Assembly (NCBI GenBank): GCA_010909165.1
Contig: MU008169.1
Span: 806,001-870,000 of the forward strand
Reading direction: 5' to 3'
Length of the DNA: 64,000 nucleotides
From: Anthoceros angustus
Taxonomy: Eukaryota > Plantae > Anthocerotophyta
Shown here: positions 24,146 to 64,000 of the stretch, piece after piece
Numbering within the stretch: the stretch's first letter is position 1
How the letters are laid out: every line of letters starts with the position of its first letter
Translations under genes and position numbers: made by a program
The notes under the pieces: generated by a model
What the model was told of the DNA's origin: nothing
Seen by the model: the letters and a program-made list of their open reading frames with translations, nothing else
Databases searched by the model: none

Positions 24146-24337
24146 CCTCGTGGTGATGAAGGTAATGCTGCCGAGTGCTCTGGTGCAGTGGTTAAATGAG
24201 GGTTTAAAGACAAAGGGGAGCTCCGGAACAACTTGCTTGTTTTACGTCTTAAGGGATGCTACTATGGGAGATGTGGCCAGCAAGTTCTGGCCGTCACCTC
24301 AGCCCAACTTCCTGACTGTGAAGCCCGAGCTTGGTAC

Positions 24338-40650: not shown

Positions 40651-40664
40651 AAGCAAAACCTCTT

Positions 40665-40935: not shown

Positions 40936-41049
40936 TAATGTTTAATATACCCAAATTGCTAGTGTGGTGATCTTTAGTCCTCTTTATGAAAGCATTCTTG
41001 GACTTCCATTTTTTTCTTTTGAGAAAAAATTAAGACTTGTAGGTGGGTT

Positions 41050-42551: not shown

Positions 42552-42629
42552 TGGTGGCGTCGAGGTTCATGGACATGTGTCCACAAAGCCGAGCTCTGCA
42601 GATGAATTATGGAAACTCCGAGTCACAAA

Positions 42630-43140
42630 CACCACGCTTTCAAAATATTTTCAAGCCATAGTTTCCTATGTGTCTTCCGTTCTAAGTCATCATTTCTCTT
42701 CCTTGTGCTCTAGCTCCATTCGCTTCCACAAACTCTCCTGTCATTCCCCAAGAAGTCTAACTTCACAAAGCTTAGCATATGGTACAACTTCATCAAGGTA
42801 CTCTAAATAAAGCGCACTTAGATCACCATGTTCGATGTTTGAACCTTCTTCAAGCCTACAAGCATTTGGTATTCTCGAGCGAACAAAATGTCCCGCATCT
42901 AGGACTATCAATCAAGAGTCTCCAAAGATTTCAAGTTTGTCATGTTGTGTTCCCTCTCTGCGGATAATATGGCTAATAATGTTGTAGCCAACTATCAGGA
43001 CACTTTTCTCATCCTCCCCTAGATGGAGAATTGCTCTATGTTGTTTTTTTTCCACATTTTTTATCTCATCAAACTTATCAATTATAGTAAGAATTTTGAT
43101 TCACCCACTTCTCATCTCCCTAAACTCATCCTTTGAGGGT
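42630..43140 (-). pseudogene. Old antisense CLSY/DRD1-like ATPase fragment
   Basis: Reverse complement resembles 4430-4800 and 58710-59250. Confidence 0.75.
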
Positions 43141-45204
43141 TCCAGGATCACTTAAAAAGTTTATCGATAGATATTTGTTACTATAAAACTATGTACATTC
43201 AATATATTTTTATTTTAATAATTTTATATAATGAATAGAGTTAGTGAGAGAACCGGACAAAATTGGAAGATTCAAACATTCACCTATTCAATGAGCTATT
43301 TGTTTGGATATTTAAAATATTTCAATTACTAGATATCAATATTATAAATATTTAAAGCCTATATTTGAGTCCTCCCTTCAAGGAATGACATCTAAACATG
43401 AGTTTATTTTTTTCGTGAAATAATATTTACAACAAGAATTCTGCAAGAGGATTTATGAGAGCGAATCCTAAGTTGGGTTTCCATATCGGACAAGAGAGGC
43501 AGGAAGAAAGTCTTCGCCTCGGCCCTCGCAACTCCGACTGGGCCAACTTGATTGGTTACCTTTGATTTTACGCAAAGCCGCAAGAGAATGTCATGATGGA
43601 TCCTCTAATTTCACTTTGGGTAACGATAGAAGACCGTTGGTATAGCATAGCATTTGTTTGCCTTCAACTTGGAAATATCTAAAGCCTACACATGTATTCG
43701 ATAGAGTACTACAAGTCCAAACTAAAGTTTTGAATCAATATTTTTTTTCTAAGCAAGTAATCACCCAATATTCAAGGTTATGCTATGAACAATTTGACAA
43801 AGAGGACCAGCTTTGTGAGATTCCTAACATATATTCAAGATGCACTAGGTCTCATCCAATTTATATACAAAAGTCATGTCAATGAGATCTTATGTGGCAT
43901 GAGTTTTGTAAATGAAGGCGTGAAAGCTTTGAGCATATAATAAGATATGTTGGAATCTCAACCAAATAGATCTACCATTCTTTTGTCACATTCAAGCACA
44001 ATCTCTAATATTACGGACTTGTTTGTTCGAGATTGAAGAACATGCAATAGAAACTTCAATTTTGACCTGCTTTAGAGATTGAAGAACATGCTATAGAAAC
44101 TTCAATTTTGACTAGTGGTGTCCCGGCCTAATCGAAACCATTGATTGAAGCGACCTTCAAGTAGAGCGTCAAGGAATCTTGAGTCTTCGCAAGGAAAATA
44201 ACAAATTGAGTCACATGATAGCAAGTCCACCATTCGAGAGGAGAAGTTGGAGAAAGTGGTATGTCTTTTGTAATTTACAATTACGTATGATTTAATAAAA
44301 ATAAAGATAATATGATCAAGAAAACAATTAGATTAGAGTGAGTTGGCCCAAAACCACATATGCATTGTATCAAGCTTCGACATGTGATGGGTTCAGTTAA
44401 AGGAAGGCCGGCCTATTTTAAGCTCTTGAAATTTGTGAGTATATTATAGGATAAATATAGCATGCAACCTCTTGAAATTGTAAGTAAGCATACTATAGGA
44501 TAAATACAGCATGAAATCTCTTGAAATTTATGAGTATATCATAGAACAAATATAGCATGCATTCTTAAAGTGATTTTAATAAAATAAAAACGTTTAATAA
44601 TTTTATACACACAATGACCTGTAAATTATTATTTGCACTGGTAATCACGTAGTGCAACAGCGTCATGGACATAAATATTTTGTTGTTGTTGTCCACTACA
44701 CAGATGCGGGTTCGATCCCCGGCAAATGCAACTTGCGTAGGTACTCAAAAGTTCTACAACGTGGCAACCCCTTTATCGATTTCAGATAATAAATCTGGTA
44801 TGCAGTGTTACTTGCTTCCATAAGGCCAGCGATTGAAAGCAGTCGGATCCAGTGCCTTGCGGATCACAGTTAGCGAGCAACCAGCTGAAAAGAACCCTAC
44901 GCACAGGACGAAATATGTGGGGCCTCCTGCTTCCTATGCATAGCGAATGCCCAGCAGGCCATTCCATGCTCAATGGCTTAGCCATAGCTTGCCAGTGCAG
45001 TGCCTGTGACCTTTTCATCAGCTGGTACCAAGCTCGGGCTTCACAGTTAGGGCTGAGGTGAAGGCTGGAACGAGCTGGCCACATCTGCCCATAACAGCAT
45101 CCTCAAGACGCAAGACGTATGACAGCAACAGAGGTTTGGGAGCTCCCATTTTCTTTCAACCTCAATTAACCAAAGCAGCGGAGACGTCAGCATTGCCTTC
45201 AAGG

Positions 45205-46486
45205 CTAAAGTGGACAGTGCCTTCTGGCGATATATAGCCTGTCCAGGTGTCTCCTTACAGCATTGGACTGAAAGAACTCATCTGCACAGTTAACTGGATC
45301 ACTCACTTCCTGGTCGCTGTTGTCAACGATACCTTCAGTCCCGAAGAGATTGACGGATATCCATTCCTTGTCTAAGGCTTGGCGGCGATTTTCTGGCTCG
45401 GTCGTATTTGCTGCAACCAGGTGATACGCAATCACCTTCTTCTCTTGGCCAACGCGGAAAGCCCGGCTCACCGCTTGGCGAGTGACGCTGGGTTAAAGAC
45501 GGGTTCCAACAGTATGATCCTGAGGCTGCAGTAAGGTTTACACCTTCTCCACAAGCCTTGATAGAGGCCAGAAGAACCCTCGAAGGGTCGTTCTTGTCAT
45601 TGAACCTCTTGATGGTACCATTTCTTGGGTGGCTTTCCCATTAACAAGCAGAACTTTGTCTCCCAAGGCCCAGCTCTTGTGCTTTTGTAGGACCTCCTGT
45701 ATATATTCCAGAGGTTTGAGCATACTGCTGAAAATAATAAGCTTCTCTCCTGCCTTGTCGCAAAGAGATAGGATCTGCATAACCCAGCTCCACACCCTTA
45801 CCGGGAGTCGAGGCTGTTCCGTCGAGATCAGGAAACTCAGAGGTGTCCCGGTACTCGTCAGGGCAGAGGGAGAACAGTCACCAATGTTGTACCTGAAGTA
45901 AGGCTAAACTTGGAACTTTTCCGCTGCACTTTGACTGCACTTTTGCCACCAGGTCCGCTTGCAAAGGCTGTAGCTTCAGATGAACAACAAACTCCTGTAG
46001 TCCTGGAAGAGACTTCAGGTCAGCACCTTCATGAGAGTCTACAAAGGAAGTCAGATTTCGAATGTTCTGGATACCCTCATCGATAGCGTCGCTACAAGCA
46101 GTCCTCGTGATAGATTTACATTTGGACTTCCAAAATTCTTCCCACTTTGTCCCATTTGTCTACCATTGCCTGGGTTATCATGCCACCATTGCGCAGTCTG
46201 TCATTCTCCTGCTCCTTCTCCAGTTCCATCCGCTTTTGTGAAAACTCTGGATCATTCCCCAAAAATTCCGGCTTCACAAAACTAAGTATCTGGTATAACT
46301 CCATGAAGTTATTCTGAAATAAAGTGCCACTCAGTATCACCCTGTTCATTGTCTTCACCTTCTTCAAGGCCTGCAGAACATTGGTATCTTCATTGCGTAC
46401 AAAATGTCCTTCATCCAAGACTACCAGATCAGGAGTCCCCACTAGAATATTGCTAAGTTCATCATGTTGTGCTCCTCCTTGTGAAT
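45205..46486 (-). pseudogene. Antisense CLSY/DRD1-like C-terminal two-thirds
   Basis: LVVLDEGHFVRNE..SGTLFQNNF..SRAFRVGQEKKV..RHLDRLYIARRH. Confidence 0.93.
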
Positions 46487-47690
46487 GACATTTTGTACGC
46501 AATGAAGATACCAATGTTCTGCAGGCCTTGAAGAAGGTGAAGACAATGAACAGGGTGATACTGAGTGGCACTTTATTTCAGAATAACTTCATGGAGTTAT
46601 ACCAGATACTTAGTTTTGTGAAGCCGGAATTTTTGGGGAATGATCCAGAGTTTTCACAAAAGCGGATGGAACTGGAGAAGGAGCAGGAGAATGACAGACT
46701 GCGCAATGGTGGCATGATAACCCAGGCAATGGTAGACAAATGGGACAAAGTGGGAAGAATTTTGGAAGTCCAAATGTAAATCTATCACGAGGACTGCTTG
46801 TAGCGACGCTATCGATGAGGGTATCCAGAACATTCGAAATCTGACTTCCTTTGTAGACTCTCATGAAGGTGCTGACCTGAAGTCTCTTCCAGGACTACAG
46901 GAGTTTGTTGTTCATCTGAAGCTACAGCCTTTGCAAGCGGACCTGGTGGCAAAAGTGCAGTCAAAGTGCAGCGGAAAAGTTCCAAGTTTAGCCTTACTTC
47001 AGGTACAACATTGGTGACTGTTCTCCCTCTGCCCTGACGAGTACCGGGACACCTCTGAGTTTCCTGATCTCGACGGAACAGCCTCGACTCCCGGTAAGGG
47101 TGTGGAGCTGGGTTATGCAGATCCTATCTCTTTGCGACAAGGCAGGAGAGAAGCTTATTATTTTCAGCAGTATGCTCAAACCTCTGGAATATATACAGGA
47201 GGTCCTACAAAAGCACAAGAGCTGGGCCTTGGGAGACAAAGTTCTGCTTGTTAATGGAAAGCCACCCAAGAAATGGTACCATCAAGAGGTTCAATGACAA
47301 GAACGACCCTTCGAGGGTTCTTCTGGCCTCTATCAAGGCTTGTGGAGAAGGTGTAAACCTTACTGCAGCCTCAGGATCATACTGTTGGAACCCGTCTTTA
47401 ACCCCAGCGTCACTCGCCAAGCGGTGAGCCGGGCTTTCCGCGTTGGCCAAGAGAAGAAGGTGATTGCGTATCACCTGGTTGCAGCAAATACGACCGAGCC
47501 AGAAAATCGCCGCCAAGCCTTAGACAAGGAATGGATATCCGTCAATCTCTTCGGGACTGAAGGTATCGTTGACAACAGCGACCAGGAAGTGAGTGATCCA
47601 GTTAACTGTGCAGATGAGTTCTTTCAGTCCAATGCTGTAAGGAGACACCTGGACAGGCTATATATCGCCAGAAGGCACTGTCCACTTTAG
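46487..47690 (+). pseudogene. Sense CLSY/DRD1-like fragment (fold-back arm)
   Basis: ORFs 46528, 47100 and 47340. Confidence 0.93.
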
Positions 47691-50060
47691 CCTTGTGGTG
47701 AAGGCAATGCTGACGTCTCCGCTGCTTTGGTTAATTGAGGTTGAAAGAAAATGGGAGCTCCCAAACCTCTGTTGCTGTCATACGTCTTGCGTCTTGAGGA
47801 TGCTGTTATGGGCAGATGTGGCCAGCTCGTTCCAGCCTTCACCTCAGCCCTAACTGTGAAGCCCGAGCTTGGTACCAGCTGATGAAAGGTCACAGGCACT
47901 GCACTGCCAAGCAGACCAACTCCCTGCTGGAAGGAGCTCAGTACAACCGGTGAGCTCACATGAATTTGACTGGACTTGCACTCAGCCTATTCACAGGCAC
48001 TGCACTGGCAAGCTATGGCTAAGCCATTGAGCATGGAATGGCCTGCTGGGCATTCGCTATGCATAGGAAGCGTGGGGCATGCCTGAGTTGCTGCAGGAGG
48101 AGGCCCCACATATTTCGTCCTGTGCGTAGGGTTCTTTTCAGCTGGTTGCTCGCTAACTGTGATCCGCAAGGCACTGGATCCGACTGCTTTCAATCGCTGG
48201 CCTTATGGAAGCAAGTAACACTGCATACCAGATTTATTATCTGAAATCGATAAAGGGGTTGCCACGTTGTAGAACTTTTGAGTACGCAAGTTGCATTGGC
48301 CGAATCGAACCCCGGACATTGTGTGTACATTGTTCTAGTGGACATTGTTCTACAACAACAACAACAACAACTTTATTTATACAACAACAACAACTTTATT
48401 TATGTCCATGACGCTGTTGCACTACGTGATTACCAGTGCAAATAATAATTTACAGGTCATTGTGTGTATAAAATTATTAAACGTTTTTATTTTATTAAAA
48501 TCACTTTAAGAATGCATGCTATATTTGTTCTATGATATACTCATAAATTTCAAGAGATTTCATGCTGTATTTATCCTATAGTATGCTTACTTACAATTTC
48601 AAGAGGTTGCATGCTATATTTATCCTATAATATACTCACAAATTTCAAGAGCTTAAAATAGGCCGGCCTTCCTTTAACTGAACCCATCACATGTCGAAGC
48701 TTGATACAATGCATATGTGGTTTTGGGCCAACTCACTCTAATCTAATTGTTTTCTTGATCATATTATCTTTATTTTATTAAATCATACGTAATTGTAAAT
48801 TACAAAAGACATACCACTTTCTCCAACTTCTCCTCTCGAATGGTGGACTTGCTATCATGTGACTCAATTTGTTATTTTCCTTGCGAAGACTCAAGATTCC
48901 TTGACGCTCTACTTGAAGGTCGCTTCAATCAATGGTTTCGATTAGGCCGGGACACCACTAGTCAAAATTGAAGTTTCTATAGCATGTTCTTCAATCTCTA
49001 AAGCAGGTCAAAATTGAAGTTTCTATTGCATGTTCTTCAATCTCGAACAAACAAGTCCGTAATATTAGAGATTGTGCTTGAATGTGACAAAAGAATGGTA
49101 GATCTATTTGGTTGAGATTCCAACATATCTTATTATATGCTCAAAGCTTTCACGCCTTCATTTACAAAACTCATGCCACATAAGATCTCATTGACATGAC
49201 TTTTGTATATAAATTGGATGAGACCTAGTGCATCTTGAATATATGTTAGGAATCTCACAAAGCTGGTCCTCTTTGTCAAATTGTTCATAGCATAACCTTG
49301 AATATTGGGTGATTACTTGCTTAGAAAAAAAATATTGATTCAAAACTTTAGTTTGGACTTGTAGTACTCTATCGAATACATGTGTAGGCTTTAGATATTT
49401 CCAAGTTGAAGGCAAACAAATGCTATGCTATACCAACGGTCTTCTATCGTTACCCAAAGTGAAATTAGAGGATCCATCATGACATTCTCTTGCGGCTTTG
49501 CGTAAAATCAAAGGTAAACCAATCAAGTTGGCCCAGTCGGAGTTGCGAGGGCCGAGGCGAAGACTTTCTTCCTGCCTCTCTTGTCCGATATGGAAACCCA
49601 ACTTAGGATTCGCTCTCATAAATCCTCTTGCAGAATTCTTGTTGTAAATATTATTTCACGAAAAAAATAAACTCATGTTTAGATGTCATTCCTTGAAGGG
49701 AGGACTCAAATATAGGCTTTAAATATTTATAATATTGATATCTAGTAATTGAAATATTTTAAATATCCAAACAAATAGCTCATTGAATAGGTGAATGTTT
49801 GAATCTTCCAATTTTGTCCGGTTCTCTCACTAACTCTATTCATTATATAAAATTATTAAAATAAAAATATATTGAATGTACATAGTTTTATAGTAACAAA
49901 TATCTATCGATAAACTTTTTAAGTGATCGGAACCCTCAAAGGATGAGTTTAGGGAGATGAGAAGTGGGTGAATCAAAATTCTTACTATAATTGATAAGTT
50001 TGATGAGATAAAAAATGTGGAAAAAAAACAACATAGAGCAATTCTCCATCTAGGGAGGAT

Positions 50061-51388
50061 GAGAAAAGTGTCTTGATCGTTAGCTACAACATCGCTAGCC
50101 GGATCATTCACAAGGAGGGAGCCCAGCATGATGAACTTAGCAATATTCTAGTGGGGACTCCTGATCTGGTAGTCTTGGATGAAGGACATTTTGTACGCAA
50201 CGAAGATACCAATGTCCTGCAGGCCTTGAAGAAGGTGAAGACAATGAACAGGGTGATACTGAGTGGCACTTTATTTCAGAATAACTTCATGGAGTTATAC
50301 CAGATACTTAGTTTCGTGAAGCCGGAATTTTTGGGGAATGATCCAGGGTTTTCACAAAAGCGGATGGAACTGGAGAAGGAGCAGGAGAATGACAGACTGC
50401 GCAATGGTGGCATGATAACCCAGGCAATGGTAGACAAATGGGACAAAGTGGGAAGAATTTTGGAAGTCCAAATGTAAATCTATCACGAGGACTGCATGCG
50501 ACGCTATCCATGAGGGTATCCAGAACATTCGAAATCTGACTTCCTTTGTAGACTCTCATGAAGGTGCTGACCTGAAGTCTCTTCCAGGACTACAGGAGTT
50601 TGTTGTTCATCTGAAGCTACAGCCTTTGCAAGCGGACCTGGTGGCAAAAGTGCAGTCAAAGTGTGGCGGTAAAAGTTCCAAGTTTAGCCTCACATCAGGT
50701 ACAACATTGGTGACTGTTCACCCGTCTCTCTGTCCTGACGAATACCAGGACACCTCTGAGTTTCCTGATCTCGACGGAACAGCCTCGACTCCCGGTAAGG
50801 GTGTGAAAGCTGATTTCGTTTGGAGATCCTATCTCTTTGTGACAAGGCAGGAGAAAAGCTTATTATTTTCAGCAGTATGCTCAAACCTCTGGAATATATA
50901 CAGGAGGTGCTACAAAAGCACAAGAGCTGGGCCTCGGGAGACAAAGTTCTGCTTGTTAATGGCAAAGCCACCCTAAGAAATGGTACCATCAAGAGGTTCA
51001 ATGACAAGAACGACCCTTCGAGGGTTCTTCTGGCCTCTATCAAGGCTTGTGGAGAAGGTGTAAACCTTACTGCAGCCTCAGGATTATACTGTTGGAACCC
51101 GTCTTTAACCCCAGCGTCACTCGCCAAGCGGTGAGCCGGGCTTTCCGCGTTGGCCAAGAGAAGAAGGTGATTGCGTATCACCTGGTTGCAGCAAATACGA
51201 CCGAGCCAGAAAATCGCCGCCAAGCCTTAGACAAGGAATGGATATCCGTCAATCTCTTCGGGACTGAAGGTATCGTTGACAACAGCGACCAGGAAGTGAG
51301 TGATCCAGTTAACTGTGCAGATGAGTTCTTTCAGTCCAATGCTGTAAGGAGACACCTGGACAGGCTATATATCGCCAGAAGGCACTGA
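50061..51388 (+). pseudogene. Young CLSY/DRD1-like C-terminal two-thirds; with its 3' flank it repeats at 60103-62113
   Basis: ORFs 50073, 50626, 50820 and 51047. Confidence 0.93.
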
Positions 51389-52165
51389 CAACTTTAGCCT
51401 TGTGGTGAAGGCAATGCTGCTGAGGTCTCTGGTGCTTTGGTTAAATGAGGGTTGAAAGAAAATGGGAGCTCCCAAACCTCTGTTGCTGTCATACATATTG
51501 CGTCTTGAGGGATGCTGCTATCGGCAGATGTGGCCAGCTAGTTCCAGCCTTCACCTCAGCCCTAACTGTGATGCCGAGCTTGGTACCAGCTGATGAAAGG
51601 TCACAGGCACTGCACTGAAGCAGACCAACTCCCTGGAAGCTGAGCTCAGTACAACCGGTGAGCTCACATGAATTTGACTGGACTTGCACTCAGCCTATTC
51701 ACAGGCACTGCACTGGCAAGCTGGCTAAGCCATTGTGCATGGAATGGCTGGGCATAAGCTATGCATAGGAAGCGTGGGGCATGCCTGAGTTGCTGCAGGA
51801 GGAGGCCCCACATATTTCGTCCTGTGCGTAGGGTTCTTTTCAGCTGGTTGCTCGCTAACTGTGATCCGCAAGGCACTGGATCCGACTGCTTTCAATCGCT
51901 GGCGTTATGGAAGCAAGTAACACAGGATACCAGATTTATTATCTGAAATCGATAAAATGGCAACGTTGTAGAACTTTTGAGTACGCAAGTTGCATTGGCC
52001 GAATCGAACCCCGGACATTGTGTGTACATTGTTCTAGTGGACATTGTTCTACAACAACAACAACAACAACTTTATTTATACAACAACAACAACAACTTTA
52101 TTTATGTCCACTAAGGATGGAAGAACCATCATGGGACAGAGATAGTACAGCGAAAAGAGGTTTAA

Positions 52166-53562
52166 ATACCGAGTTCAAGCTTCCAAGTTCTAGGAGTTGG
52201 TCTGAATGCCTAGGGGTAGTGCATGTGACCTCCTCAGCTGATACCATGGCCACACCTGCCCATGGCAGCATCCCTCAAGAAGTATAACAGCAACAAGAGG
52301 TTCCAGAGCTCCCCAATTGTCTTTAAACCCCCACTTAACCAAAGCACCAGAGCACTCAGCAGCATTGCCTTCTCTATTATAGCATTGAGATCACCAAGAG
52401 GCCAAAGTCGACGTGACTCAGGTTCCTAGGCCCTTGTAGGTCAGAACCTGAACAGGCTAAAGTCACTCAGTGGGCCTTTCTTCAGGCTCTGACGTACAAG
52501 GGCCTAGGTTGCTGAATATTTTCATCTTCCTCCAAAATATGCTTATCCTCGAGGATTTTGGCGTTGCTGTCTTCTCTTGGCCTGCAAACATGGCCACGCA
52601 TTGCCTTCAAACAGAGTGAAGCAGCTCTACAAAAGATGTCAAAGTGAAGCTCACGGCCGCAGGAGATACGAATGGACACCAGTGGTGCTCACAGCCCGGA
52701 GAGGAGCGAAGAACTCCACATTCATTGCAGCTCTCACATGACCACAGAGACAGCACACTTGACCACATTCTGAATTCCGTTCATAGTCATGTATACAGCC
52801 GATCGGCTTTCTGCTGTTGCTCCGTTTCAATAGCTGCAGGTTGACTACAATGCAGGTTTACTGTTATGAATAGTACGCAACGCGGAAATGTGCTTTACAA
52901 GGGTACCCATAGAACCGCTAAAGAAACCAAAGTTGATGTTACCTCTCCAAGCGCTTCAGCCAAGAGCCTGCCTCCAGAGTTGTGCCATCTCATATTCCTT
53001 GGCCCAGGGCTCTGTGTCTGACATATCTGTGCTCTCTTGACACACAGTGCCTTTCCTCGTCGGGAAGGTCTTCCCTTGGATGGAGATGTAGTTTCAGGCT
53101 CCAAACTTGGAGCCTGAACTCGGACTGGGTCTGGAGTATTCGGATCGTAGGTCGGAGATAGAGGCTCAGCCTCCAAACTTAGACCCTGGACTCGGACTGG
53201 GTCTGGGGTCTTCGGACCCTAGGTTGGAGATGTAGGCTCAGCCTCCAAGCTTGCAGCCTGGACTCGCACTGGGTATGGAGTCATCGGACCCTTGGTTGGA
53301 TTTATAGTCTCAGCCTCCAACATGGAAGCCTGGACTGTGACTAGGCCTCGGGCTAAGCCCTTCATTTTTGCCCGAACCGTGGTGTTGGCTACGGTTGTTC
53401 CCATTCAAACCTGCAACTCCTTTGCAGCAAGCAGCCCGCCCGCAGAATCTTGAAAAAACCTTCCAGAGAGAGCTGCGACAGTGGACTGGCTGGCTCCCTC
53501 TGTGCTGCCATCAGGAGTCACCTAGTCTGGCCGACTAAGCTTCAAGTCATTTCTGACAAGCA
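52166..53562 (-). repeat. Inverted copy of 35618-36923 (antisense CLSY 5' exons)
   Basis: Identical mirror ORFs 36411+/52482- and 36246-/52644+. Confidence 0.95.
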
Positions 53563-53808
53563 GGTTTCTCTTTACACCGAGAATGATGATACATATAATC
53601 AAATGACGCACAGATGTTCATCCCTGCCCTGGGCACTAGATTCCTACTCTGCTCGTGAAAATGTGGTGACATGTGAGCGTAGTTGGCGGTGATAAGGTAA
53701 CGGTCAAGATCCAATCTTAGATCCCAAGAGCTGATGCCCTTGATTGGCGGGCAGCCTCTCGGCTGGGATCAGGAAGTACCTGGTTTCGCTGAAAAGGAGC
53801 CAAGTCAT

Positions 53809-56697
53809 TTGTGACAAGGCTCCCAGATAGGATGCAGTGCAGTGCAAACCATAAGGTACATAAGACTACCTACGGTGAGGAATAAGGAGGAGGAGTAGTG
53901 TCACTGTTGTCCTGTTGATCCACCTCTTTGCTTAGCTTAAGGTTCATTTCCATGGGTGTTGAGATAGGCCTAGATTCTAACATCTTAAACTTTGTTAAGA
54001 TTTCTTGAATATATTTTGATTGGTGAATGAGAATGCTTCTAGCCTTTCTATCCCTTAAGACCTAAATGCCCAAGCAAAGGAAAGCTCTCTACAAGTGGTC
54101 ATGGAGAAACGCTTAGCTAGCATAGATGGTCTCTTCTAGTATGGCCTTAGTGTTGGACATAAGAACTATATCGTCTCATTATACCCCTAAGACGATAAAG
54201 TAAATGCTTGATCTTTTAATGTAGATATTATTATCGAGTTTAACTTAGTGAAACCTAGTTCCTTAAGGCTGGCGTCTAGCTTAAAATACCATTTCATAGC
54301 ACTCTTAAGTCCGTATAAGGACTTTAATAGTAGGCATGCATTGTACTTTGTCCTATCCTTAACATATATCCCTTGAGAATCTCCATGTAGATGGTGTGGT
54401 CGAGATCTCCATATAATAAAGCTGTCTTAATGTCAAGTTGCATTAGCTCATAGTCATGGTGAGATGCTAAGGCTAGGAGGATCCTAAGTGAGGTTATCTT
54501 AAGTACGGGACTAAAAGTTTCATCATAATCAAAACCATATTTTTGAGAGTATCCTTGGCTACTAATCTAGCCTTGTATCTCTCTATGCTACCATCGGCAT
54601 TTAATTTGATCTTGAAGGTCCACTTAGATCCCACAAGTTGTCTATCCTTAGGTAGAGTAGTTAAAGTCCAAGTTTTATTGGCTTGTAGGGATTCTAGTTC
54701 GACACGATTGCTTGTTTCGTGTTCCTTTTGTGGGCATGATGGCCTCTGGTAGTGGCGAGGACAAAGCGATCTATAGCATTAAGACAATATGCTAAATTGC
54801 TCTTGGGATCCTTGATTAGTAGGAGAATATCTATATTTTACACATTGGAGCGGTGAGATTGTCTACGCCTAGGCTGGTTAGTGGCGGTGATTGTGGGATG
54901 TCCTCTTGCACATTTTGAAATAAGGGTCTAGAGTTTCCTCGGCTTCAGGCATTTATATGTTGCATATCGGGAGTATTGTAATTAGAAAATCAGATAAATG
55001 CCTACTTGTTGTTGAGGTGCCCGTCGTTTTTGAAAGTCGGGGTCAAGAGCATATTGTGAAAACTCAATGTCACTTGCCGATCCCGGCGCCGAGGCGATGC
55101 TCGGGTCATTGTTCGCTAAATCGATCCGGTGTGTGGCCGATCGAGCATGAGCGGGAATCGGGGCGCGTTGAAGGCCAAGGACCGGGATTGAGAGCTGCGC
55201 AGTGCGTCGGGTTGTGGATTACATTGGTCTTGAGCGCGTCGGCGTGTAGGTGCGGAGAGGTGTTGTGGAGATTCGCCGGAGTTGGGGCGGATCGAAAATT
55301 TGAGTCGAAAATGTCCCTGCTTTACTGCGATTCACGATTTCTCGATTTGATCGTGTCGGCGTGCCGTCCCCTCTCAATCGAAGGGCGTGAGCCGGAGCTG
55401 AGGTGTTTGAGAGTGGATCGGCGAGTCGAAAAGATGGTTTGTGGTGTGTCCTGGTGAAGGGAATGGCGAGGAGGTGCGGTGTGGCGAGGCTGAGACATGG
55501 GCGTGTCGTCTGGGGAGCGGGTTGGGAAGGTTAGGACCGGTGCGAGAAAAGTCCACAGAGCCATCTTCATCATCATCTAGGTTGGTTGGGGCTCCCCGGT
55601 GTGGTGGATGTCCTCGAGGAAGGTGACGTCTGAGTGGGTGACTTTGTGTGTTTGAGGGTGGATAATTTTGTAACCTTTGATCCGTCGGTAAAGCCAATGA
55701 AGCGAAATTTCATGCCTTGTGATCTAGTTTGGTTGGATTGCCTTAGGAATGTGGGCATAGGCAGGGGAACCAAAATCCGTGTAGAGAGATCGGGCTTGAC
55801 TGTCAGCTTCAGAGTGCCAGTGAGAGAGAAGAGGTTGTGGTGCGATGTAGGCATGCGCATTGCCTCCGCCAATAGGTTTTAGGAAGGCGGGCATGAATCA
55901 TCATTGCCAAACCACATTCTGGATGGTCCGATTCATTCTTTCAACCCCATTTTGTTGGGATGTGTAAGGAGTGGTAATTTGACGGTTGATACCATGTTCC
56001 TTGCAGTGGGTGAATTGAGTAGAGCCATATTCTCCACCGTCGGATCTAAGGCATAATAAGGTATCGCCTTGCTTTTCGACTGTGTCTTGTATTCCTTGAA
56101 GCATGGAAATGCTTGGGCCTTGGTCTTGATATATATATAGTAAAGCGAGTGAAATCATCGATAATAAGCATGAAGTAGGTATAACCAAAGAGTGATTTAT
56201 TGAAAGGCCCGGATGTCGAGTGTACTAGTTGAAGGCGCTTGGTAGCTCTTGTGTTGGATGCCTTAGGAAAAGGGCGATGGCTTTTCGAGGGAACAGCTTC
56301 ACAAGTACGTCCTCAATTCGTGAGAGTAATGCCATGGGCTGCTTGTGTGTTGATCATCTCCTTCATTTTCTGCAAATGCATATGCCCAAGCGTGCCAAAG
56401 GAAGGTCCGATTTTGTTTCTGTACTGCTGTTAGAGAGGAAGGGTGACTAACCCTTAGATGATATAGGTCATCATTTTAAGATCACCGGTGGCAATTAGAT
56501 CGCCTTGAGGGGTTTTCAATGGCAGATGGCCATTGCCAAAACAAACATAACATCTTGATCAACTTTTCGTGCGGAAAAGAGGTTTTTGTTAGTCCGGGAA
56601 CTAAGAGGACATCCGAAATCTGCGGTGGAGTGTGGTTGCTGGAGCAATGGAGCCATGGCATAATATGATGTTTGGTGTTATCTCCAAGGGACAAAGT
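53809..56697 (-). mobile_element. Inverted internal Copia segment (reverse complement of 26107-28994), no LTRs
   Basis: Identical mirror ORFs, e.g. 27346-/54957+ and 26615+/55901-. Confidence 0.96.
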
Positions 56698-57193
56698 GGG
56701 AAGAATTTTGGAAGTCCAAATGTAAATCTATCACGAGGACTGCATGTAGCTATCCATGAGGGTATCCAGAACATTCGAAATCTGACTTCCTTTGTAGACT
56801 CTCATGAAGGTGCTGACCTGAAGTCTCTTCCAGGACTACAGGAGTTTGTTGTTCATCTGAAGCTACAGCCTTTGCAAGCGGACCTGGTGGCAAAAGTGCA
56901 GTCAAAGTGTGGCGGTAAAGTTCCAAGTTTAGCCTCACATCAGGTACAACATTGGTGACTGTTCACCCGTCTCTCTGTCCTGACGAATACCAGGACACCT
57001 CTGAGTTTCCTGATCTCGACGGAACAGCCTCGACTCCCGGTAAGGGTGTGAAAGCTGATTTCGTTTTGCAGATCCTATCTCTTTGTGACAAGGCAGGAGA
57101 AAAGCTTATTATTTTCAGCAGTATGCTCAAACCTCTGGAATATATACAGGAGGTGCTACAAAAGCACAAGAGCTGGGCCTGGGAGACAAAGTT
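56688..57193 (+). pseudogene. CLSY/DRD1-like mid-helicase piece embedded in inverted Copia
   Basis: RNLTSFVDSHEGAD..VHPSLCP..GEKLIIFS. Confidence 0.93.
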
Positions 57194-57344
57194 GGGTTGT
57201 CTTTGTAGGTGTAACTTTGGTAAAATATTCCCTATGGGGGTCATGTCTTTGCGAGGCTCCGAATCAATATACAGTGTTCGCCTTGGGCGATAAGCAAGAG
57301 GCTACTAGTGCTAATGGTGTGCTAGTGCCCGGAGGATTGTGGCT
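57185..57344 (-). mobile_element. Inverted Copia piece (reverse complement of 25955-26114)
   Basis: Direct sequence match, 160 bp. Confidence 0.93.
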
Positions 57345-57769
57345 CCAAAAGTGATGGTGGAACCCTGGAAGGATGAGTTCCATAGATGGAATGTGAGGAT
57401 ATCAAGATTCTCACTGTATGACAAGTCCACTGAGACACACGATGTGGAGAAACGTCGTAGAGAGATTCTTCATCAATGGGAGGCAGAGAAAAGTGTCTTG
57501 ATCGTTAGCTACAACATCGCTAGCCGGATCATTCACAAGGAGGAGCACAACATGATGAACTTAGCAATATTCTAGTGGGGACTCCTGATCTGGTAGTCTT
57601 GGATGAAGGACATTTTGTACGCAATGAAGATACCAATGTCCTGCAGGCCTTGAAGAAGGTGAAGACAATGAACAGGGTGATACTGAGTGGCACTTTATTT
57701 CAGAATAACTTCATGGAGTTATACCAGATACTTAGTTTCGTGAAGCCGGAATTTTTGGGGAATGATCCA
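57335..57769 (+). pseudogene. CLSY/DRD1-like ATPase motif Ia-III piece
   Basis: VAPKVMVEPWKDEF..LDEGH..SGTLFQNNF. Confidence 0.93.
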
Positions 57770-58338
57770 CTGGAAAACCATGGCATGGTGATCAACATGG
57801 TCACCTTGACATTCAAGGTGGTAGCTTTTGATTGTATGTATAGTATGCATGATATCATATCATATATCTCATGGTGGGTCCATGCTTAATCTTGTTGTCC
57901 CTCCACTATTGCATTGCCTTGTTTCATACCTGCATGAGCACGTTTTTGCTTGATTATTGTCCTCCCATTGATCTTTCTCTAGTTGTGTTCCTCGTAGGGT
58001 TGGGGATGGGGATGGTGGATTTCAGACTCACTCGTAACCCTGAGCTTGCGCTCTTCGGATATTAGTGATACGAAATTTCCGGATGGGGAAATTGTGTTGC
58101 TTGGCCAAATCAAATTTGTCCTCCTTGGACAGGAAAGGTGGGAGGTAGACATGTTGGGACTTTTTAATTTGATGGAGTGTTTAATGGCTGATGGTATGCT
58201 CTAAGGAGGCAATTGATGTGTATTTGGAGAGTGATCACGTATAGTTTCTGCAGGTGTTAGAATTAGTTTTGTGTGTGTTTCTAGACCTTGTAAATTCTAT
58301 TATCTGATTTTGAAATTCCTCTATTTCGATTGTGGAGG
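57761..58338 (-). mobile_element. Inverted Copia piece (reverse complement of 24963-25541)
   Basis: Direct sequence match. Confidence 0.93.
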
Positions 58339-58379
58339 TGCTTCACTCTGTTTGAAGGAGTTTGTGGCCATGTCTGCAG

Positions 58380-59919
58380 GCCAAGGGAAGACAAAAACGC
58401 AGCGATGAGCATGAGGATTTCTTGGAGGAAGATAAGATATTCAGCAACCTCGGCCCTTGTAGGTCAGAAGCTGAAGAAAGGCCAATTCAAAGGCTGAAGG
58501 TGAAGATTCCTCCTCATTTCATGCCCACGATGAAGGAACATCAGGTGAAAGGATTTCAATTCCTTGTCAAGTCTCTGGATGGCAGAGGAGGATGTATTTT
58601 TCAACATGCTCCAGGAACAGGAAAAACGTTCTTGATGATAGCCTTTGTGAAAGGCTTACTCACTACCTATCCGGCCAAGAAGGTGCTGATTGTGGCTCCA
58701 AAAGTGATGGTGGAACCCTGGAAGGATGAGTTCCATAGATGGAATGTGAGGGATATCAAGATTCTTACTGTGTATGACAAGTCCACTGAGACACACGATG
58801 TGGAGAAACGTCGTAGAGAGATTCTTCATCAATGGGAGGCAGAGAAAAGTGTCTTGATCGTTAGCTACAACATCGCTAGCCGGATCATTCACAAGGAGGG
58901 AGCCCAGCATGATGAACTTAGCAATATTCTAGTGGGGACTCCTGATCTGGTAGTCTTGGATGAAGGACATTTTGTACGCAACGAAGATACCAATGTCCTG
59001 CAGGCCTTGAAGAAGGTGAAGACAATGAACAGGGTGATACTGAGTGGCACTTTATTTCAGAATAACTTCATGGAGTTATACCAGATACTTAGTTTCGTGA
59101 AGCCGGAATTTTTGGGGAATGATCCAGGGTTTTCACAAAAGCGGATGGAACTGGAGAAGGAGCAGGAGAATGACAGACTGCGCAATGGTGGCATGATAAC
59201 CCAGGCAATGGTAGACAAATGGGACAAAGTGGGGAAGAATTTTTGGAAGTCCAAATGTAAATCTATCACGAGGACTGCATGTAGCGACGCTATCCATGAG
59301 GGTATCCAGAACATTCGAAATCTGACTTCCTTTGTAGACTCTCATGAAGGTGCTGACCTGAAGTCTCTTCCAGGACTACAGGAGTTTGTTGTTCATCTGA
59401 AGCTACAGCCTTTGCAAGCGGACCTGGTGGCAAAAGTGCAGTCAAAGTGTGGCGGTAAAAGTTCCAAGTTTAGCCTCACATCAGGTACAACATTGGTGAC
59501 TGTTCACCCGTCTCTCTGTCCTGACGAATACCGGGACACCTCTGAGTTTCCTGATCTCGACGGAACAGCCTCGACTCCCGGTAAGGGTGTGAAAGCTGAT
59601 TTCGTTTTGGAGATCCTATCTCTTTGTGACAAGGCAGGAGAAAAGCTTATTATTTTCAGCAGTATGCTCAAACCTCTGGAATATATACAGGAGGTGCTAC
59701 AAAAGCACAAGAGCTGGGCCTGGGAGACAAAGTTCTGCTTGTTAATGGCAAAGCCACCCTAAGAAATGGTACCATCAAGAGGTTCAATGACAAGAACGAC
59801 CCTTCGAGGGTTCTTCTGGCCTCTATCAAGGCTTGTGGAGAAGGTGTAAACCTTACTGCAGCCTCCAGGATTATACTGTTGGAACCCGTCTTTAACCCCA
59901 GCGTCACTCGCCAAGCGGT
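58380..59919 (+). pseudogene. Main helicase exon of a CLASSY/DRD1-family SNF2 remodeler, truncated inside motif VI
   Basis: 466-aa ORF 58362-59762: MKEHQVKGFQFL, GGCIFQHAPGTGKTF, VAPK..W..EF, LDEGH, SGTLFQNNF, VHPSL, GVKADFV. One 1-nt frameshift near 59720. Continues LLASIKACGEGVNLTAASR..FNPSVTRQAV, then Copia sequence. Confidence 0.94.
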
Positions 59920-60111
59920 TGTAGATCCCTCGCCACGGGTTGAGTAAGTGCCACGTCCTCTGATGCCTCTCATGTTTCCTCTGTCTCGGCCTCTGTCTCC
60001 CTCGAAAGCCGGAGGATGGCTCTCCGGCATGAGCAAAACTTTCCGGCGTCTTCTTGATGGCATTGTATAACTTGTTGATTAGAGGTTTGATGCCTTGGAG
60101 GCTTTGTACGC
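59911..60111 (-). mobile_element. Inverted Copia piece (reverse complement of 25620-25820)
   Basis: Direct sequence match, 201 bp. Confidence 0.93.
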
Positions 60112-61301
60112 AATGAAGATACCAATGTCCTGCAGGCCTTGAAGAAGGTGAAGACAATGAACAGGGTGATACTGAGTGGCACTTTATTTCAGAATAACTT
60201 CATGGAGTTATACCAGATACTTAGTTTCGTGAAGCCGGAATTTTTGGGGAATGATCCAGGGTTTTCACAAAAGCGGATGGAACTGGAGAAGGAGCAGGAG
60301 AATGACAGACTGCGCAATGGTGGCATGATAACCCAGGCAATGGTAGACAAATGGGACAAAGTGGGAAGAATTTTGGAAGTCCAAATGTAAATCTATCACG
60401 AGGACTGCATGTAGCTATCCATGAGGGTATCCAGAACATTCGAAATCTGACTTCCTTTGTAGACTCTCATGAAGGTGCTGACCTGAAGTCTCTTCCAGGA
60501 CTACAGGAGTTTGTTGTTCATCTGAAGCTACAGCCTTTGCAAGCGGACCTGGTGGCAAAAGTGCAGTCAAAGTGTGGCGGTAAAGTTCCAAGTTTAGCCT
60601 CACATCAGGTACAACATTGGTGACTGTTCACCCGTCTCTCTGTCCTGACGAATACCGGGACACCTCTGAGTTTCCTGATCTCGACGGAACAGCCTCGACT
60701 CCCGGTAAGGGTGTGAAAGCTGATTTCGTTTTGGAGATCCTATCTCTTTGTGACAAGGCAGGAGAAAAGCTTATTATTTTCAGCAGTATGCTCAAACCTC
60801 TGGAATATATACAGGAGGTGCTACAAAAGCACAAGAGCTGGGCCTCGGGAGACAAAGTTCTGCTTGTTAATGGCAAAGCCACCCTAAGAAATGGTACCAT
60901 CAAGAGGTTCAATGACAAGAACGACCCTTCGAGGGTTCTTCTGGCCTCTATCAAGGCTTGTGGAGAAGGTGTAAACCTTACTGCAGCCTCCAGGATTATA
61001 CTGTTGGAACCCGTCTTTAACCCCAGCGTCACTCGCCAAGCGGTGAGCCGGGCTTTCCGCGTTGGCCAAGAGAAGAAGGTGATTGCGTATCACCTGGTTG
61101 CAGCAAATACGACCGAGCCAGAAAATCGCCGCCAAGCCTTAGACAAGGAATGGATATCCGTCAATCTCTTCGGGACTGAAGGTATCGTTGACAACAGCGA
61201 CCAGGAAGTGAGTGATCCAGTTAACTGTGCAGATGAGTTCTTTTCAGTCCAATGCTGTAAGGAGACACCTGGACAGGCTATATATCGCCAGAAGGCACTG
61301 A
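60103..61301 (+). pseudogene. CLSY/DRD1-like C-terminal portion through the natural stop
   Basis: ORFs 60139, 60351 and 60617 (HelicC lobe intact over about 200 aa). Confidence 0.93.
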
Positions 61302-62184
61302 CAACTTTAGCCTTGTGGTGAAGGCAATGCTGCTGAGGTCTCTGGTGCTTTGGTTAAATGAGGGTTGAAAGAAAATGGGAGCTCCCAAACCTCTGTTGCT
61401 GTCATACATATTGCGTCTTGAGGGATGCTGCTATCGGCAGATGTGGCCAGCTAGTTCCAGCCTTCACCTCAGCCCTAACTGTGATGCCCGAGCTTGGTAC
61501 CAGCTGATGAAAAGGTCACAGGCACTGCACTGCCAAGCAGACCAACTCCCTAACACTGGAAGCTTGAGCTCAGTACAACCGGTGAGCTCACATGAATTTG
61601 ACTGGACTTGCACTCAGCCTATTCACAGGCACTGCACTGGCAAGCTATGGCTAAGCCATTGTGCATGGAATGGCCGGCTGGGCATAAGCTATGCATAGGA
61701 AGCGTGGGGCATGCCTGGAGTTGCTGCAGGAGGAGGCCCCCACATATTTCGTCCTGTGCGTAGGGTTCTTTTCAGCTGGTTGCTCGCTAACTGTGATCCG
61801 CAAGGCACTGGATCCGACTGCTTTCAATCGCTGGCGTTATGGAAGCAAGTAACACAGGATACCAGATTTATTATCTGAAATCGATAAAATGGCAACGTTG
61901 TAGAACTTTTGAGTACGCAAGTTGCATTGGCCGGGAATCGAACCCCCGGACATTGTGTGTACATTGTTCTAGTGGACATTGTTCTACAACAACAACAACA
62001 ACAACTTTATTTATACAACAACAACAACAACTTTATTTATGTCCACTAAGGATGGAAGAACCATCATGGGACAGAGATAGTACAGCGTAAAAGAGGTTTA
62101 AATACCGAGTTCACTTACGTACATGACTACCAGTGCAAATAACAATTTATCGGTAATTGTGTGTGTAAAATCGCCATTAAAATT

Positions 62185-64000
62185 TCATTGAAACACCGAT
62201 TAGGAAGATCGTCACGAGGCCACGAGACACTCCGAGCTGCTCTTGTCGGATCGTTCTCTTGCCTGCCTGCTACCCGGGTTTTCGACATACATGCAAGCAC
62301 TTGTCCCGTGATCATCCAATGTCCCTTCCCTCATCAGTTCTTGGGTTTCTTCCCACACTTCAGCCCTGTGGACACTCTTCGCTGCGCATGCGGTGACCGC
62401 CAATAAACTGCCTGGCTTTTCACCATTTCTCCTCATGCTGAGCGGAATTCTGGCTATGTGTGAGAAGTCCCCGTCTCACCATCGCGGTCTGTAAAATGCC
62501 ACCGAGTGCAATGGATCTACTCCCATTGCCGGTCCGTGTGTGGCATCAGCGCCAAGCAACACATCATAATTTCTTGCATTAGATACCAACCTCAATGACC
62601 GAAGCATCCTCGGTGCTTGGCTTGAGCTGTATGCGAATCGGATCCCGAGTGATCCCCATCACTTGCTCTTTGGTACCCGCAGACGTGGAGATGCGCACCT
62701 CACATGGCTTCAATTTGTCTCCGTATAGCTGGAGTGCCTTCTGCACACGGGCACCAAGCAGCACTGGATCCGCACCCGTATCTACCAGCACACATTCTGG
62801 GGCAATTCACTGTGACTTCTCGACCTTGATTGTCCACCATGGCGACGCCCCCTTTTCCTCGGGCAGCTGATTTCAAATGTTCACCACACAAGCTGGTAAG
62901 CCCGAACACTATGTCGACCTTTGCGGATGCCTTTTTCATCCAGGCCTGCATTGCCTGCTTGAATGGCTGCACCTTGACTCCCAGATCACGTAAGCTAACC
63001 ATGGGCATATCCATTGCCCTTTCCAGTAGGAGCTCCATACTGGGCGATTTTCTTTCTGAGGGGTTCACGGACTCATGATCCTCCACCTGCCTGAAGGCCG
63101 TGGGCATTTTGAGTTGATTTCTCGCCCTAATCCTTTTCCCTTTGACACCTTCCCCCATGACAATGTCACCTTTCATACCAGGGGCCACCTCCATGGTCAT
63201 CAATGCATATACTTCTTGATCCGAGTCATACTCCTCCAAAGGTGTGTTTGCGACTCCTGGTGTGCTTGCATTCATTGCCAACTGCTCTTGCAGTCTGTGC
63301 ACCTCACTGAGAAGCGCCTTTCGAGTGTAACCCACCGACGGTTTTATTTTGTCACCCAGCCGATCCCCAGCTCCTTTGGGCTTAAATTCTGGGTGAGCTT
63401 GCCAACATGCTGCCTCCATGTGACCTGTTTTGGCACAGGTCCTGCACACCTCCTTTTCCTTAGCTCCACCAACTCGGCATTCAAAGGCTTTGTGCGCACC
63501 CCTGCATCGCAGGCACTTTACCGTTGCCTTGGTGCTGACCGCACTGTTGGCTGGACGTTCCCTGGCAGGTGAATTTCTCCGCAGAGCATTCCCTTGTGAC
63601 TGTTCACGATGGGAGGTCCTTCCTTGTAGCTTTTGTGTATTTGCGGCATGCTGGTGCCCTTTGACGAGATTATGTTCTTCCCAATATGCACTGGTCACAG
63701 CGTCTCCTTTCATGACCCTTTCCGCCATTTCATAAGCCTGCTCCAACTCATAGTTTGCACCATGCAGCATGTGGAGAAAGTTAGCAATCACCCTCCTCTG
63801 TCTACCCGGAAGGGCGGCTATGTAGATTTGTGCGGCTTCCCGCATCGTCTTCACTCGTGTGTCCTTTACCAACTGCCTTAATCTCAGGTACGCCGACCTA
63901 AGGGGCTCATTGGGCTTGATGATGAATCTCGACAGCTCCTGGATCTTTTCTATGGAAGATACCGGAAACATCTCTACAAACCTGCTGAACATTTCATCCA
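62185..64000 (-). mobile_element. Ty3/Gypsy-like gag plus aspartic protease, running off the window edge
   Basis: 430-aa ORF with two zinc knuckles (CLRCRGAHKAFEC; CRTCAKTGHMEAAC), followed in another frame by LVDTGADPVLLG and YDVLLG; no RT or LTR recognised in the window. Confidence 0.75.

Follow-up and report, generated by a model that had tools for sequence, protein, structure and literature searches.

How did a 14- to 16-kb block inside the window (the whole 64-kb stretch of DNA analyzed here) come to be a mosaic of near-identical copies of two neighbors, an SNF2/CLSY-like gene and a dead Copia element? An earlier, sequence-only reading had attributed it to one polymerase shuttling between two templates. 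We reexamined each junction by self-BLAST and by base-by-base extension of both donors, and at least 12 junctions between positions 42551 and 60111 were found to link nonadjacent segments. The explanation that we favor, to which we give about an even chance, is that template switching coupled to repair or replication produced a complex rearrangement in the plant very recently.

Extent of the mosaic

The segments lie in both direct and inverted orientations, every donor that was identified is at most 35 kb away, and the strand changes at 10 of the 11 scorable switches. Because the Copia element (24344-29800) and an older CLSY paralogue fragment (V, 35618-36923) are still intact in the window, the segments are copies rather than relocated pieces. 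The left edge of the block is probably at 42552, within an intron, and a 91-nt duplication flanks the block. The mosaic sits within the contig, with continuous sequence to its left and right. Two features bear on its borders and internal gaps.

42461 to 42551, + strand: 91-nt direct duplication, 100% identical to 58330-58420; the two copies flank the block 42552-58329
53563 to 53808, no strand assigned: 246-nt stretch for which no donor was found within the 64-kb window; its edges are an 18-nt imperfect repeat (53543-60 and 53801-18)

Substitutions amount to no more than 0.15% in all young pieces. The Copia pieces carry none in 3,827 nt, versus 8 in approximately 7,300 nt for the other pieces (the probability of zero being approximately 0.015).

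The Copia donor and its antisense copies

24344 to 29800, + strand: resident degenerate Ty1/Copia element with RVT_2 and LTR-like ends, donor of K1 to K4
53809 to 56697, - strand: K1, antisense Copia 28994>26107, 0 substitutions and 1 single-base indel in 2888 nt
57185 to 57344, - strand: K2, antisense Copia 26114>25955, 160/160 identical
57761 to 58338, - strand: K3, antisense Copia 25541>24963, 0 substitutions and 1 indel in 578 nt
59911 to 60111, - strand: K4, antisense Copia 25820>25620, 201/201 identical

The donor is, as judged from its sequence, a degenerate member of the Ty1/Copia class, as evidenced by RVT_2, an integrase-like motif upstream of the reverse transcriptase (RT), and LTR-like ends. 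Its RVT_2 matches (28025-28613; E = 2e-16, Pfam) are spread over three frames, and six-frame translation revealed an RNase H-like motif and, upstream of the RT, an integrase-like motif at 26579-26899 that has no Pfam hit. The LTR-like ends (24332-24547 and 29604-29782) are approximately 5% apart in substitutions. The element interrupts copy III, an older CLSY paralogue whose two parts are 20369-24337 and 29795 onward. Elsewhere in the window, a gag-like open reading frame (ORF) at 62700-63992 on the - strand has a single distant match, of 48% identity, in Logan.

Mapping bore out the earlier observation that the four pieces are out of order in the donor (coordinates above), and copying does resume at essentially the same Copia position after the first CLSY excursion, 7 to 8 nt behind the departure point. 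Together, K1 to K4 tile the donor once without overlap, covering 28994-24963 with the loss of 134 and 78 nt, and K4 fills part of the gap between K2 and K3 (chance, approximately 0.05). Such nonoverlapping coverage could result from chromothripsis-like end joining (NHEJ or Pol-theta) after the shattering of an inverted Copia duplicate and of CLSY copies. However, the donors have been kept and the CLSY pieces overlap heavily, which implies copy gain, and we consider end joining improbable.

That one partner is a retrotransposon, and that RT is known to switch templates at short identities, raises the further alternative of a transposable element (TE) or RT origin, in which RT would switch between copackaged RNAs or a Pack-MULE, Helitron, or CACTA element would capture the fragments. 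We regard this origin as very improbable. The Copia element is degenerate, with its RT in three frames, and every Copia piece is antisense to CLSY. Moreover, self-BLAST of the mosaic borders revealed no LTR and no TIR or other TE border, inverted repeats being the feature searched for as a sign of TIR-element or Helitron capture, and the flanking duplication of 91 nt is not a TE-sized target-site duplication.

The CLSY-like gene, its paralogues, and its pieces

The gene is a predicted CLSY (CLASSY) SNF2 remodeller: its copies include an SNF2-rel_dom (E = 1.3e-34) in piece a and a Helicase_C domain at 60617-61321 in piece D (Pfam), although its closest named relatives, which are CLASSY 3/4-like, share just 30 to 33% identity. 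Each CLSY copy within the window is either a fragment or disrupted by frameshifts. Those that contribute to the mosaic, or flank it, are as follows.

35618 to 36923, + strand: V, older CLSY paralogue fragment, donor of the inverted 52166-53562
41020 to 42551, + strand: E, 5' part of the CLSY-like gene (exon 1 and 5' intron), cut off at 42551
42741 to 46488, - strand: left palindrome arm, in which a spacer separates an antisense L-type CLSY fragment from antisense B-type CLSY (A')
46482 to 50060, + strand: right palindrome arm, made of B, a spacer, and the start of L-type
50061 to 52177, + strand: C, 3' half of a-type CLSY, reached from the L-type copy by an in-register switch at GAGAAAAGTGTC (50061-72)
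52166 to 53562, - strand: inverted copy of V, joined to C at ATACCGAGTTCA (12 nt)
56688 to 57193, + strand: P1, sense CLSY, equivalent to 59221-59734 and 60353-60859
57335 to 57769, + strand: P2, sense CLSY, equivalent to 58688-59126
58330 to 59919, + strand: a, CLSY from within an intron through the SNF2 domain, with a 466-aa open frame at 58362-59762
60103 to 62113, + strand: D, CLSY 3' part, whose start backs up 949 nt from where a ends, so that 58971-59919 is duplicated

The native order, E and then a, is backed by three older paralogues, with which E is colinear as far as 42551 and from which it diverges beyond. E ends at 42551, and the sequence of a picks up in the same intron, 91 nt upstream of that point, a proximity with a chance of approximately 0.04. 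An older open-frame paralogue lacks approximately 708 nt bounded by GT...AG (from approximately 41886 in E to approximately 58462 in a), and from this gap we infer that a begins in an intron, in agreement with the retained intron that the sequence-only reading had placed at 58330. A piece that starts in an intron is evidence against a spliced mRNA template and, with it, against retroposition.

Within 43022-50060, the palindrome arms are 3 substitutions in approximately 3.3 kb and 18 indels apart; weak L-type similarity in the left arm reaches approximately 42600. Over 1985 nt, C and D show 3 substitutions and 18 indels relative to each other. V and its inverted copy share 95.7% identity including gaps, with 8 substitutions in 1299 nt (self-BLAST). 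P1 differs from D by 2 substitutions and 1 indel and has character states in common with D, C, and a. P2 differs from a by 4 substitutions and 3 indels, with three changes private to it, and its final 156 nt are identical to 60103-60258. Variants private to P1 and P2 lie at 57069, 57396, and 57412-14. Neither P1 nor P2 matches any in-window CLSY copy exactly, and their states are shared with different copies. Derived states are common to a and C, whereas D, P2, A', and B carry the ancestral ones.

The notion of one polymerase and two templates is thus too simple, since there are at least five template kinds (Copia, a-type CLSY, B-type CLSY, L-type CLSY, and paralogue V) and P1 and P2 are unlike any copy in the window. 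What stands of the proposed shuttling is the stretch 53809-60111, which reads as a nascent strand that used clean microhomologies to alternate between antisense Copia and sense CLSY.

Anatomy of the junctions

Eight joins, J1 to J8, link nonhomologous sequences.

52166-77: J1, 12 nt, CLSY 3' flank to the inverted paralogue at 36923
56688-97: J2, 10 nt exact, Copia/CLSY join
57185-93: J3, 9 nt exact, Copia/CLSY join
57335-44: J4, 10 nt exact, Copia/CLSY join
57761-69: J5, 9 nt exact, Copia/CLSY join
58330-38: J6, 9 nt exact, Copia/CLSY join
59911-19: J7, 9 nt exact, Copia/CLSY join
60103-11: J8, 9 nt exact, Copia/CLSY join

The sequence-only reading had listed nine shared words and described the switches as free of inserted bases. 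All nine words were recovered at their reported positions, and J1 to J8 have exact overlaps of 9 to 12 nt and no filler. A random join would have an overlap of at least 9 nt with a chance of approximately 4e-5, and such overlaps are seen here seven to eight times. Longer imperfect homology surrounding the joins was ruled out, as the 12 nt on each side of the words match at 22% (43/192), which is the chance level. None of the joins is blunt or has an overlap of 0 to 4 nt, and this too, together with the lack of filler, speaks against end joining. Pol-theta-mediated end joining uses approximately 1 to 6 nt of microhomology and leaves short templated inserts; the overlaps here, in joins that bound tracts of 160 to 2889 nt, are too long for it, as had been argued. 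No poly(A) was present at any of the joins inspected, which again is unlike retroposition.

Two further junctions are of other kinds. First, the ninth word, at 50061-72, had been counted as a switch word like the others, but it is an identical 12-nt block in equivalent positions of two CLSY paralogues, which makes the switch there an in-register one. Second, the fold-back junction (46482-46488), with an offset of 76 nt in gene coordinates, does lie on an imperfect word, as had been described; this word is 7 nt with one mismatch, and the exact overlap is just 2 nt.

K1 starts (53809) on the single longest word, of 12 nt, that is common to antisense Copia and sense CLSY, a word missing from the earlier list. 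Exact look-up of the window's ORFs in a protein collection found none, and the ORF at 59759-60157 on the - strand, which spans J7 and J8, had no match there.

A threshold in overlap length

The overlap lengths observed are 9, 10, and 12 nt, with a steplike cutoff below 9 nt. The words common to antisense Copia and sense CLSY number 167 of exactly 8 nt and approximately 49 of at least 9 nt, and yet words of 8 nt or less are used by none of J1 to J8 (P of approximately 7e-6 if word choice tracked availability among words of at least 8 nt). This step does not fit end joining. A software overlap threshold is an improbable source of the floor, as assemblers and polishers are not known to make joins at 9 to 12 nt.

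The 9-nt floor may reflect recombinase-type (Rad51-like) pairing rather than simple annealing. Recombinase filaments refuse targets without 8 nt of microhomology (PMC10903458, citing Qi 2015 and Lee 2015). The likeness to such Rad51/RecA sampling is the length threshold, at 8 to 9 nt; the differences are that the filament work is biophysics on purified components rather than on rearrangement junctions in plants, and that the mosaic has no 8-nt join.

Template switching in the plant or in vitro

Under the explanation that we favor, a 3' DNA end would have departed its template within the intron of the CLSY-like gene and been serially reprimed on single-stranded templates up to approximately 35 kb off, each time via an exact word of at least 9 nt. 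These templates would be CLSY paralogues, an inverted paralogue fragment, and then, for the last 6 kb, the opposite Copia strand. The end would have rejoined its own gene on two occasions, at points 91 nt and 949 nt behind its departure, leaving the flanking duplications. The origin may have been in vivo, through a single event or a few that were closely spaced, and the templates of the Copia/CLSY shuttle could be the leading-strand templates of diverging forks. In-vivo switching is favored by the eight nonhomologous joins, with their exact words, absent filler, and chance-level flanks, and by the structured variants, derived in a and C and ancestral in D, P2, A', and B.

The chief rival, which we treat as a serious if tentative possibility, is an in-vitro chimera that arose in whole-genome amplification (WGA), a strand-displacing library step, or assembly, was taken into the contig, and was polished with reads from the true loci. 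In that scenario, a displaced 3' end would reanneal repeatedly to nearby displaced strands. Chimeras of phi29 multiple displacement amplification (MDA) have overlaps that peak at 7 nt and are mostly 5 to 8 nt, with distances mostly below 10 kb (PMC9984789), and amplification chimeras are in the majority inverted, with preferred distances of 80 and 280 nt (reviewed in PMC9984789). The mosaic resembles them in its short overlaps, its donors on the same molecule at no more than 35 kb where identified, its predominance of inverted switches (10/11), and its short-offset fold-back, whose 76 nt fits the expected offsets (approximately 80 and 250 to 300 nt); both the inversions and the fold-back count against an in-vivo event. 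The identity of the Copia pieces to their donor also fits an in-vitro copy, and mixed CLSY character states are expected from polishing with reads from several paralogues. Nevertheless, overlaps of 5 to 8 nt are absent from J1 to J8, where all reach at least 9 nt; the distance between Copia and CLSY is approximately 30 kb, not below 10 kb; the mosaic is internal to an assembled contig that continues in both directions; and P1 and P2 have no identical counterpart at any window locus.

Older junctions in the window also bear on this choice. Overlaps of 12 nt (7221-32), approximately 10 to 13 nt (10585-97), and 9 nt (13877-85) join units that are now 0.4 to 0.9% apart in substitutions. Since these units have diverged, the overlap signature predates the young mosaic and favors a process in the living plant over an in-vitro one.

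The error pattern points the other way. Among the CLSY copies, indels, with a bias toward deletions, far exceed substitutions and homopolymers of at least 5 nt are depleted, which suggests a noisy long-read consensus and weighs against in-vivo switching. A CAG/CTG basecalling artefact as the source of the indels was not supported, as just 4 to 5 of 18 lie near such sites per young pair. A uniformly error-prone copying polymerase was rejected, given 2 indels in 3.8 kb of Copia tracts versus 18 in 2 kb of C.

Comparison with known systems

FoSTeS/MMBIR overlaps are usually a few bases, shorter than the 9 to 12 nt seen here. The mosaic is otherwise like the products of FoSTeS/MMBIR and chromoanasynthesis: its breakpoints are clustered, its templates are nearby and in both orientations, its donors are retained, its microhomology joins are seamless and without untemplated bases (with only 2 nt at the fold-back), and returns to the original template leave duplications. 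It differs in the uniformity of its overlaps, with their floor at 9 nt, and in its density of at least 12 switches in approximately 14 to 16 kb.

Plant double-strand-break repair can copy "filler" DNA and, through template switching, patch gene fragments (Wicker et al. 2010, as cited in PMC13477047). Such repair likewise builds pseudogene mosaics of gene and TE fragments, copied into a break from ectopic templates, but with one or two filler blocks, in contrast to the many alternating tracts and near-zero age of the mosaic.

Implications

If real, the locus preserves, with unusual clarity and at an age near zero, roughly a dozen template switches made in succession in the germline genome of a plant, and because both donors are adjacent, the rules of template choice are directly readable from it. 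A hard 9-base floor, despite more plentiful shorter words, would then point to recombinase-type pairing and away from annealing over a few bases, the usual assumption for MMBIR or Pol theta; it could be tested genome-wide. Also, a silencing-linked family (CLSY-like, by sequence) would be undergoing fragmentation into pseudogene pieces in inverted and direct orientation. If the mosaic is instead an artefact, the assembly holds amplification chimeras, and its gene-fragment and palindrome content is unfit for biological interpretation.

A broader idea, which we think unlikely, is that this lineage has active in-vivo copying in which jumps between the templates of nearby forks are gated by recombinase-like exact words of at least 9 nt, so that mosaics are built genome-wide, including in the predicted RdDM-remodeller paralogue cluster. 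In the terms of such gated jumps, 9 nt corresponds to three base triplets and 12 nt to four.

The CLSY gene cluster and its resident Copia element

Fragments of a single SNF2 gene, in which Pfam domains SNF2-rel_dom and Helicase_C were matched, form a cluster that fills the window. Among named proteins, the nearest relatives are CLASSY 3/4-like (CLSY), at only 30-33% identity, indicating that the host belongs to a plant lineage thinly covered by databases. One older CLSY paralogue (20369-24337, resuming from 29795) harbors a retroelement with integrase-like and RNase H-like motifs, as revealed by six-frame translation:

~24344-29800 (+, sense): degenerate Ty1/Copia, RVT_2 matches spread over three frames

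A 430-aa open frame at 62700-63992 (-) carries a CX2CX4HX4C zinc knuckle and resembles retrotransposon Gag. A Pfam search of this frame returned no match, and its sole homologue among 5.8 billion proteins is a Logan contig, with 48% identity over half its length.

Copia and CLSY pieces alternate across seamless joins

Self-BLAST, together with extending both donors one base at a time, confirms the joins. Four antisense Copia pieces (K1-K4) interleave with four sense CLSY pieces (P1, P2, a, and D) within a series of eight non-homologous joins (J1-J8).

Pieces of the mosaic
K1: 53809-56697, antisense Copia, donor 28994>26107
P1: 56688-57193, sense CLSY
K2: 57185-57344, antisense Copia, donor 26114>25955
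P2: 57335-57769, sense CLSY
K3: 57761-58338, antisense Copia, donor 25541>24963
a: 58330-59919, sense CLSY
K4: 59911-60111, antisense Copia, donor 25820>25620
D: 60103-62113, sense CLSY

Joins and their overlaps
J1: 52166-77, 12 nt
J2: 56688-97, 10 nt
J3: 57185-93, 9 nt
J4: 57335-44, 10 nt
J5: 57761-69, 9 nt
J6: 58330-38, 9 nt
J7: 59911-19, 9 nt
J8: 60103-11, 9 nt

A sequence-only reading had placed nine shared words at template switches without inserted bases; all nine words are present where it put them, and an inserted base was found in 0/8 of J1-J8. In the 12 nt flanking each side of these eight words, the donors match at chance level (43/192, 22%); the words are isolated exact blocks, not tips of more extended homology. 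As had been claimed, the order of the Copia pieces departs from that of the donor. They are mutually non-overlapping on the donor, K4 lies within the K2-K3 gap, and the element loses just 134 and 78 nt.

The word at 50061-72, listed earlier with the other switch words, is an in-register switch or crossover. This 12-nt identical block occupies the same gene position in a diverged (~75% identical) L-type CLSY paralogue and the a-type gene. Left of it, piece C (the a-type 3' half, 50061-52177, +) matches the left-arm L-type copy; right of it, C matches a. The proposed fold-back on an imperfect short overlap has just 2 exact nt, or 7 nt with one mismatch; its offset is 76 nt in gene coordinates.

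For two tracts inside the rearranged block, 53563-53808 and 42552 to ~42610, the window contains no donor, and the former is flanked by an 18-nt imperfect direct repeat.

Word choice has a floor at 9 nt

Maximal exact words common to antisense Copia and sense CLSY number 167 of 8 nt, 36 of 9, 10 of 10, 2 of 11, and 1 of 12, roughly equal to shuffled-sequence expectation. Five Copia/CLSY joins lie on 9-nt words, two on 10-nt words, and none on words of ≤8 nt, while the start of K1 coincides exactly with the sole 12-nt word. Were choice set by availability among words of at least 8 nt, such use would have P ~7e-6. Use per site increases >20-fold from 8 to 9 nt and only ~1.5-fold from 9 to 10 nt; this dependence is a step, where annealing stability would be expected to give a smooth increase.

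Qi reportedly found in 2015 that pairing gains stability with a ninth base and, beyond it, in 3-nt increments. Rad51/RecA filaments refuse targets without an 8-nt microhomology (PMC10903458). The 9-nt floor and the lengths 9, 10, and 12 would be compatible with recombinase-type pairing.

Against the main rival explanation, an amplification or library chimera incorporated into the assembly, stand the published amplification chimeras, whose overlaps peak at 7 nt (5-8) and whose distances are mostly <10 kb (PMC9984789), and the position of this mosaic inside its contig. Nevertheless, 10/11 switches are inverted, as a chimera would favor, and the fold-back offset is near the preferred chimera distances of 80 and 280 nt (PMC9984789). 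We regard a chimera as a tentative but serious possibility.

Divergence, age, and consensus noise

Over 3,827 nt, K1-K4 carry no substitution relative to the Copia donor and two indels, each of a single base in a homopolymer. Counts elsewhere are also low: 3 substitutions in ~3.3 kb between the palindrome arms (43022-46488 versus 46482-50060), 3 in 1985 nt between C and D (alongside 18 indels), 1 in 941 nt between a and D, 1 in 1071 nt between a and C, and 8 in 1299 nt between paralogue fragment V (35618-36923, +) and its inverted copy V-rc (52166-53562, -). The whole rearranged block is therefore young. The outer BLAST match adds 56 substitutions, every one right of 50061, and B-type CLSY copies are 2.3% apart from the a/C/D type. 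Within the block, the Copia tracts rank as youngest or cleanest (P of zero substitutions ~0.015 at the others' rate), and their zero divergence is a point for a chimera.

Indels far exceed substitutions among CLSY copies; those between C and D are mainly 1-nt homopolymer changes, mainly deletions in C. Homopolymers of at least 5 nt are depleted in the window. This combination suggests a noisy long-read consensus of multi-copy sequence, which again favors a chimera, although the near-identity of the K pieces and Copia argues against uniform random noise, unless the same reads polished both. P1 and P2 are exact copies of no in-window CLSY piece, have states in common with different copies, and, in P2, carry three private changes; thus either their donor lies beyond the window or they have a mixed consensus, and mixed character states likewise favor a chimera.

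Across near-identical CLSY copies, indel events are 2- to 6-fold above substitutions (44987-52177 and 56688-62113; also 5715-8705, 13877-16587, and 38393-42169). A/T runs fall steeply from length 4 to 5, and within the 64 kb none is longer than 9 nt. Paralogue V (35832-36005) and its inverted copy (53073-53352) each carry a 72-nt tandem repeat in their N-terminal part, seemingly with different copy numbers.

An intron at the block limits

Piece E (41020-42551, +) represents the 5' portion of a gene of the same type as a, and three older paralogues show the native order to be E, then a. The two share 91 identical nt (42461-42551 = 58330-58420). Because ~708 nt bounded by GT...AG in E/a are missing from an older paralogue whose 426-aa frame is unbroken, 58330 to ~58462 is intron sequence, which upholds the earlier argument from retained intron against a spliced mRNA template. 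On one reading, a complex insertion of 15.8 kb (42552-58329) interrupts that intron, with the 91-nt duplication on both sides, and 59919 begins a second excursion into K4 with a re-start 949 nt back.

In the paralogue carrying the Copia insertion (20369-24337), the 426-aa frame stays open where E/a hold the intron (41886-42551, 58421-58462), reflecting loss of the intron or else a processed origin of this paralogue.

Proposed serial template switching

The mosaic would belong with the FoSTeS/MMBIR-like complex rearrangements, a class already known. What sets it apart is the sharp floor at 9 nt, a trait of real interest should it prove true in native DNA and genome-wide. In the proposed mechanism, a 3' end would switch template serially, and the segment anatomy is what such copying would yield: donors are kept, the joins leave no seam, pieces run in both orientations, and the strand rejoins its original template behind its departure point. 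The shuttle goes back and forth from the + strand at Copia to the - strand at CLSY, and these could have served as leading-strand templates for a pair of diverging forks. The original observation stands, slightly enlarged, and its switching interpretation is supported in part, given P1 and P2, the in-register word, and the 2-nt exact fold-back. We give in-vivo microhomology-gated switching an even chance. End joining of shattered fragments, an RT-mediated chimera, and TE capture are poor fits.

Older junctions

Outside the young block, units joined at three older junctions are now 0.4-0.9% apart in substitutions:

7221-32: overlap 12 nt
10585-97: overlap ~10-13 nt
13877-85: overlap 9 nt

That diverged junctions carry the same signature speaks against a chimera and suggests that this process has also run in vivo at earlier times.

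An older mosaic (5715-13900) is built of repeated units, 96-99% identical, that are made up of short CLSY fragments, with junction overlaps of 12, ~10-13, 9, 8, and 6 nt and a 54-nt tandem array at 8698-8968. The 7-kb palindrome of CLSY-derived sequence at 43022-50060 has arms ~0.1% apart in substitutions. Stretches of 44, 56, 26, 12, and 36 nt that are present in the right arm and the other copies are missing from its left arm, and these deletions show little microhomology. If transcribed, the palindrome could yield hairpin RNA against the CLSY family.
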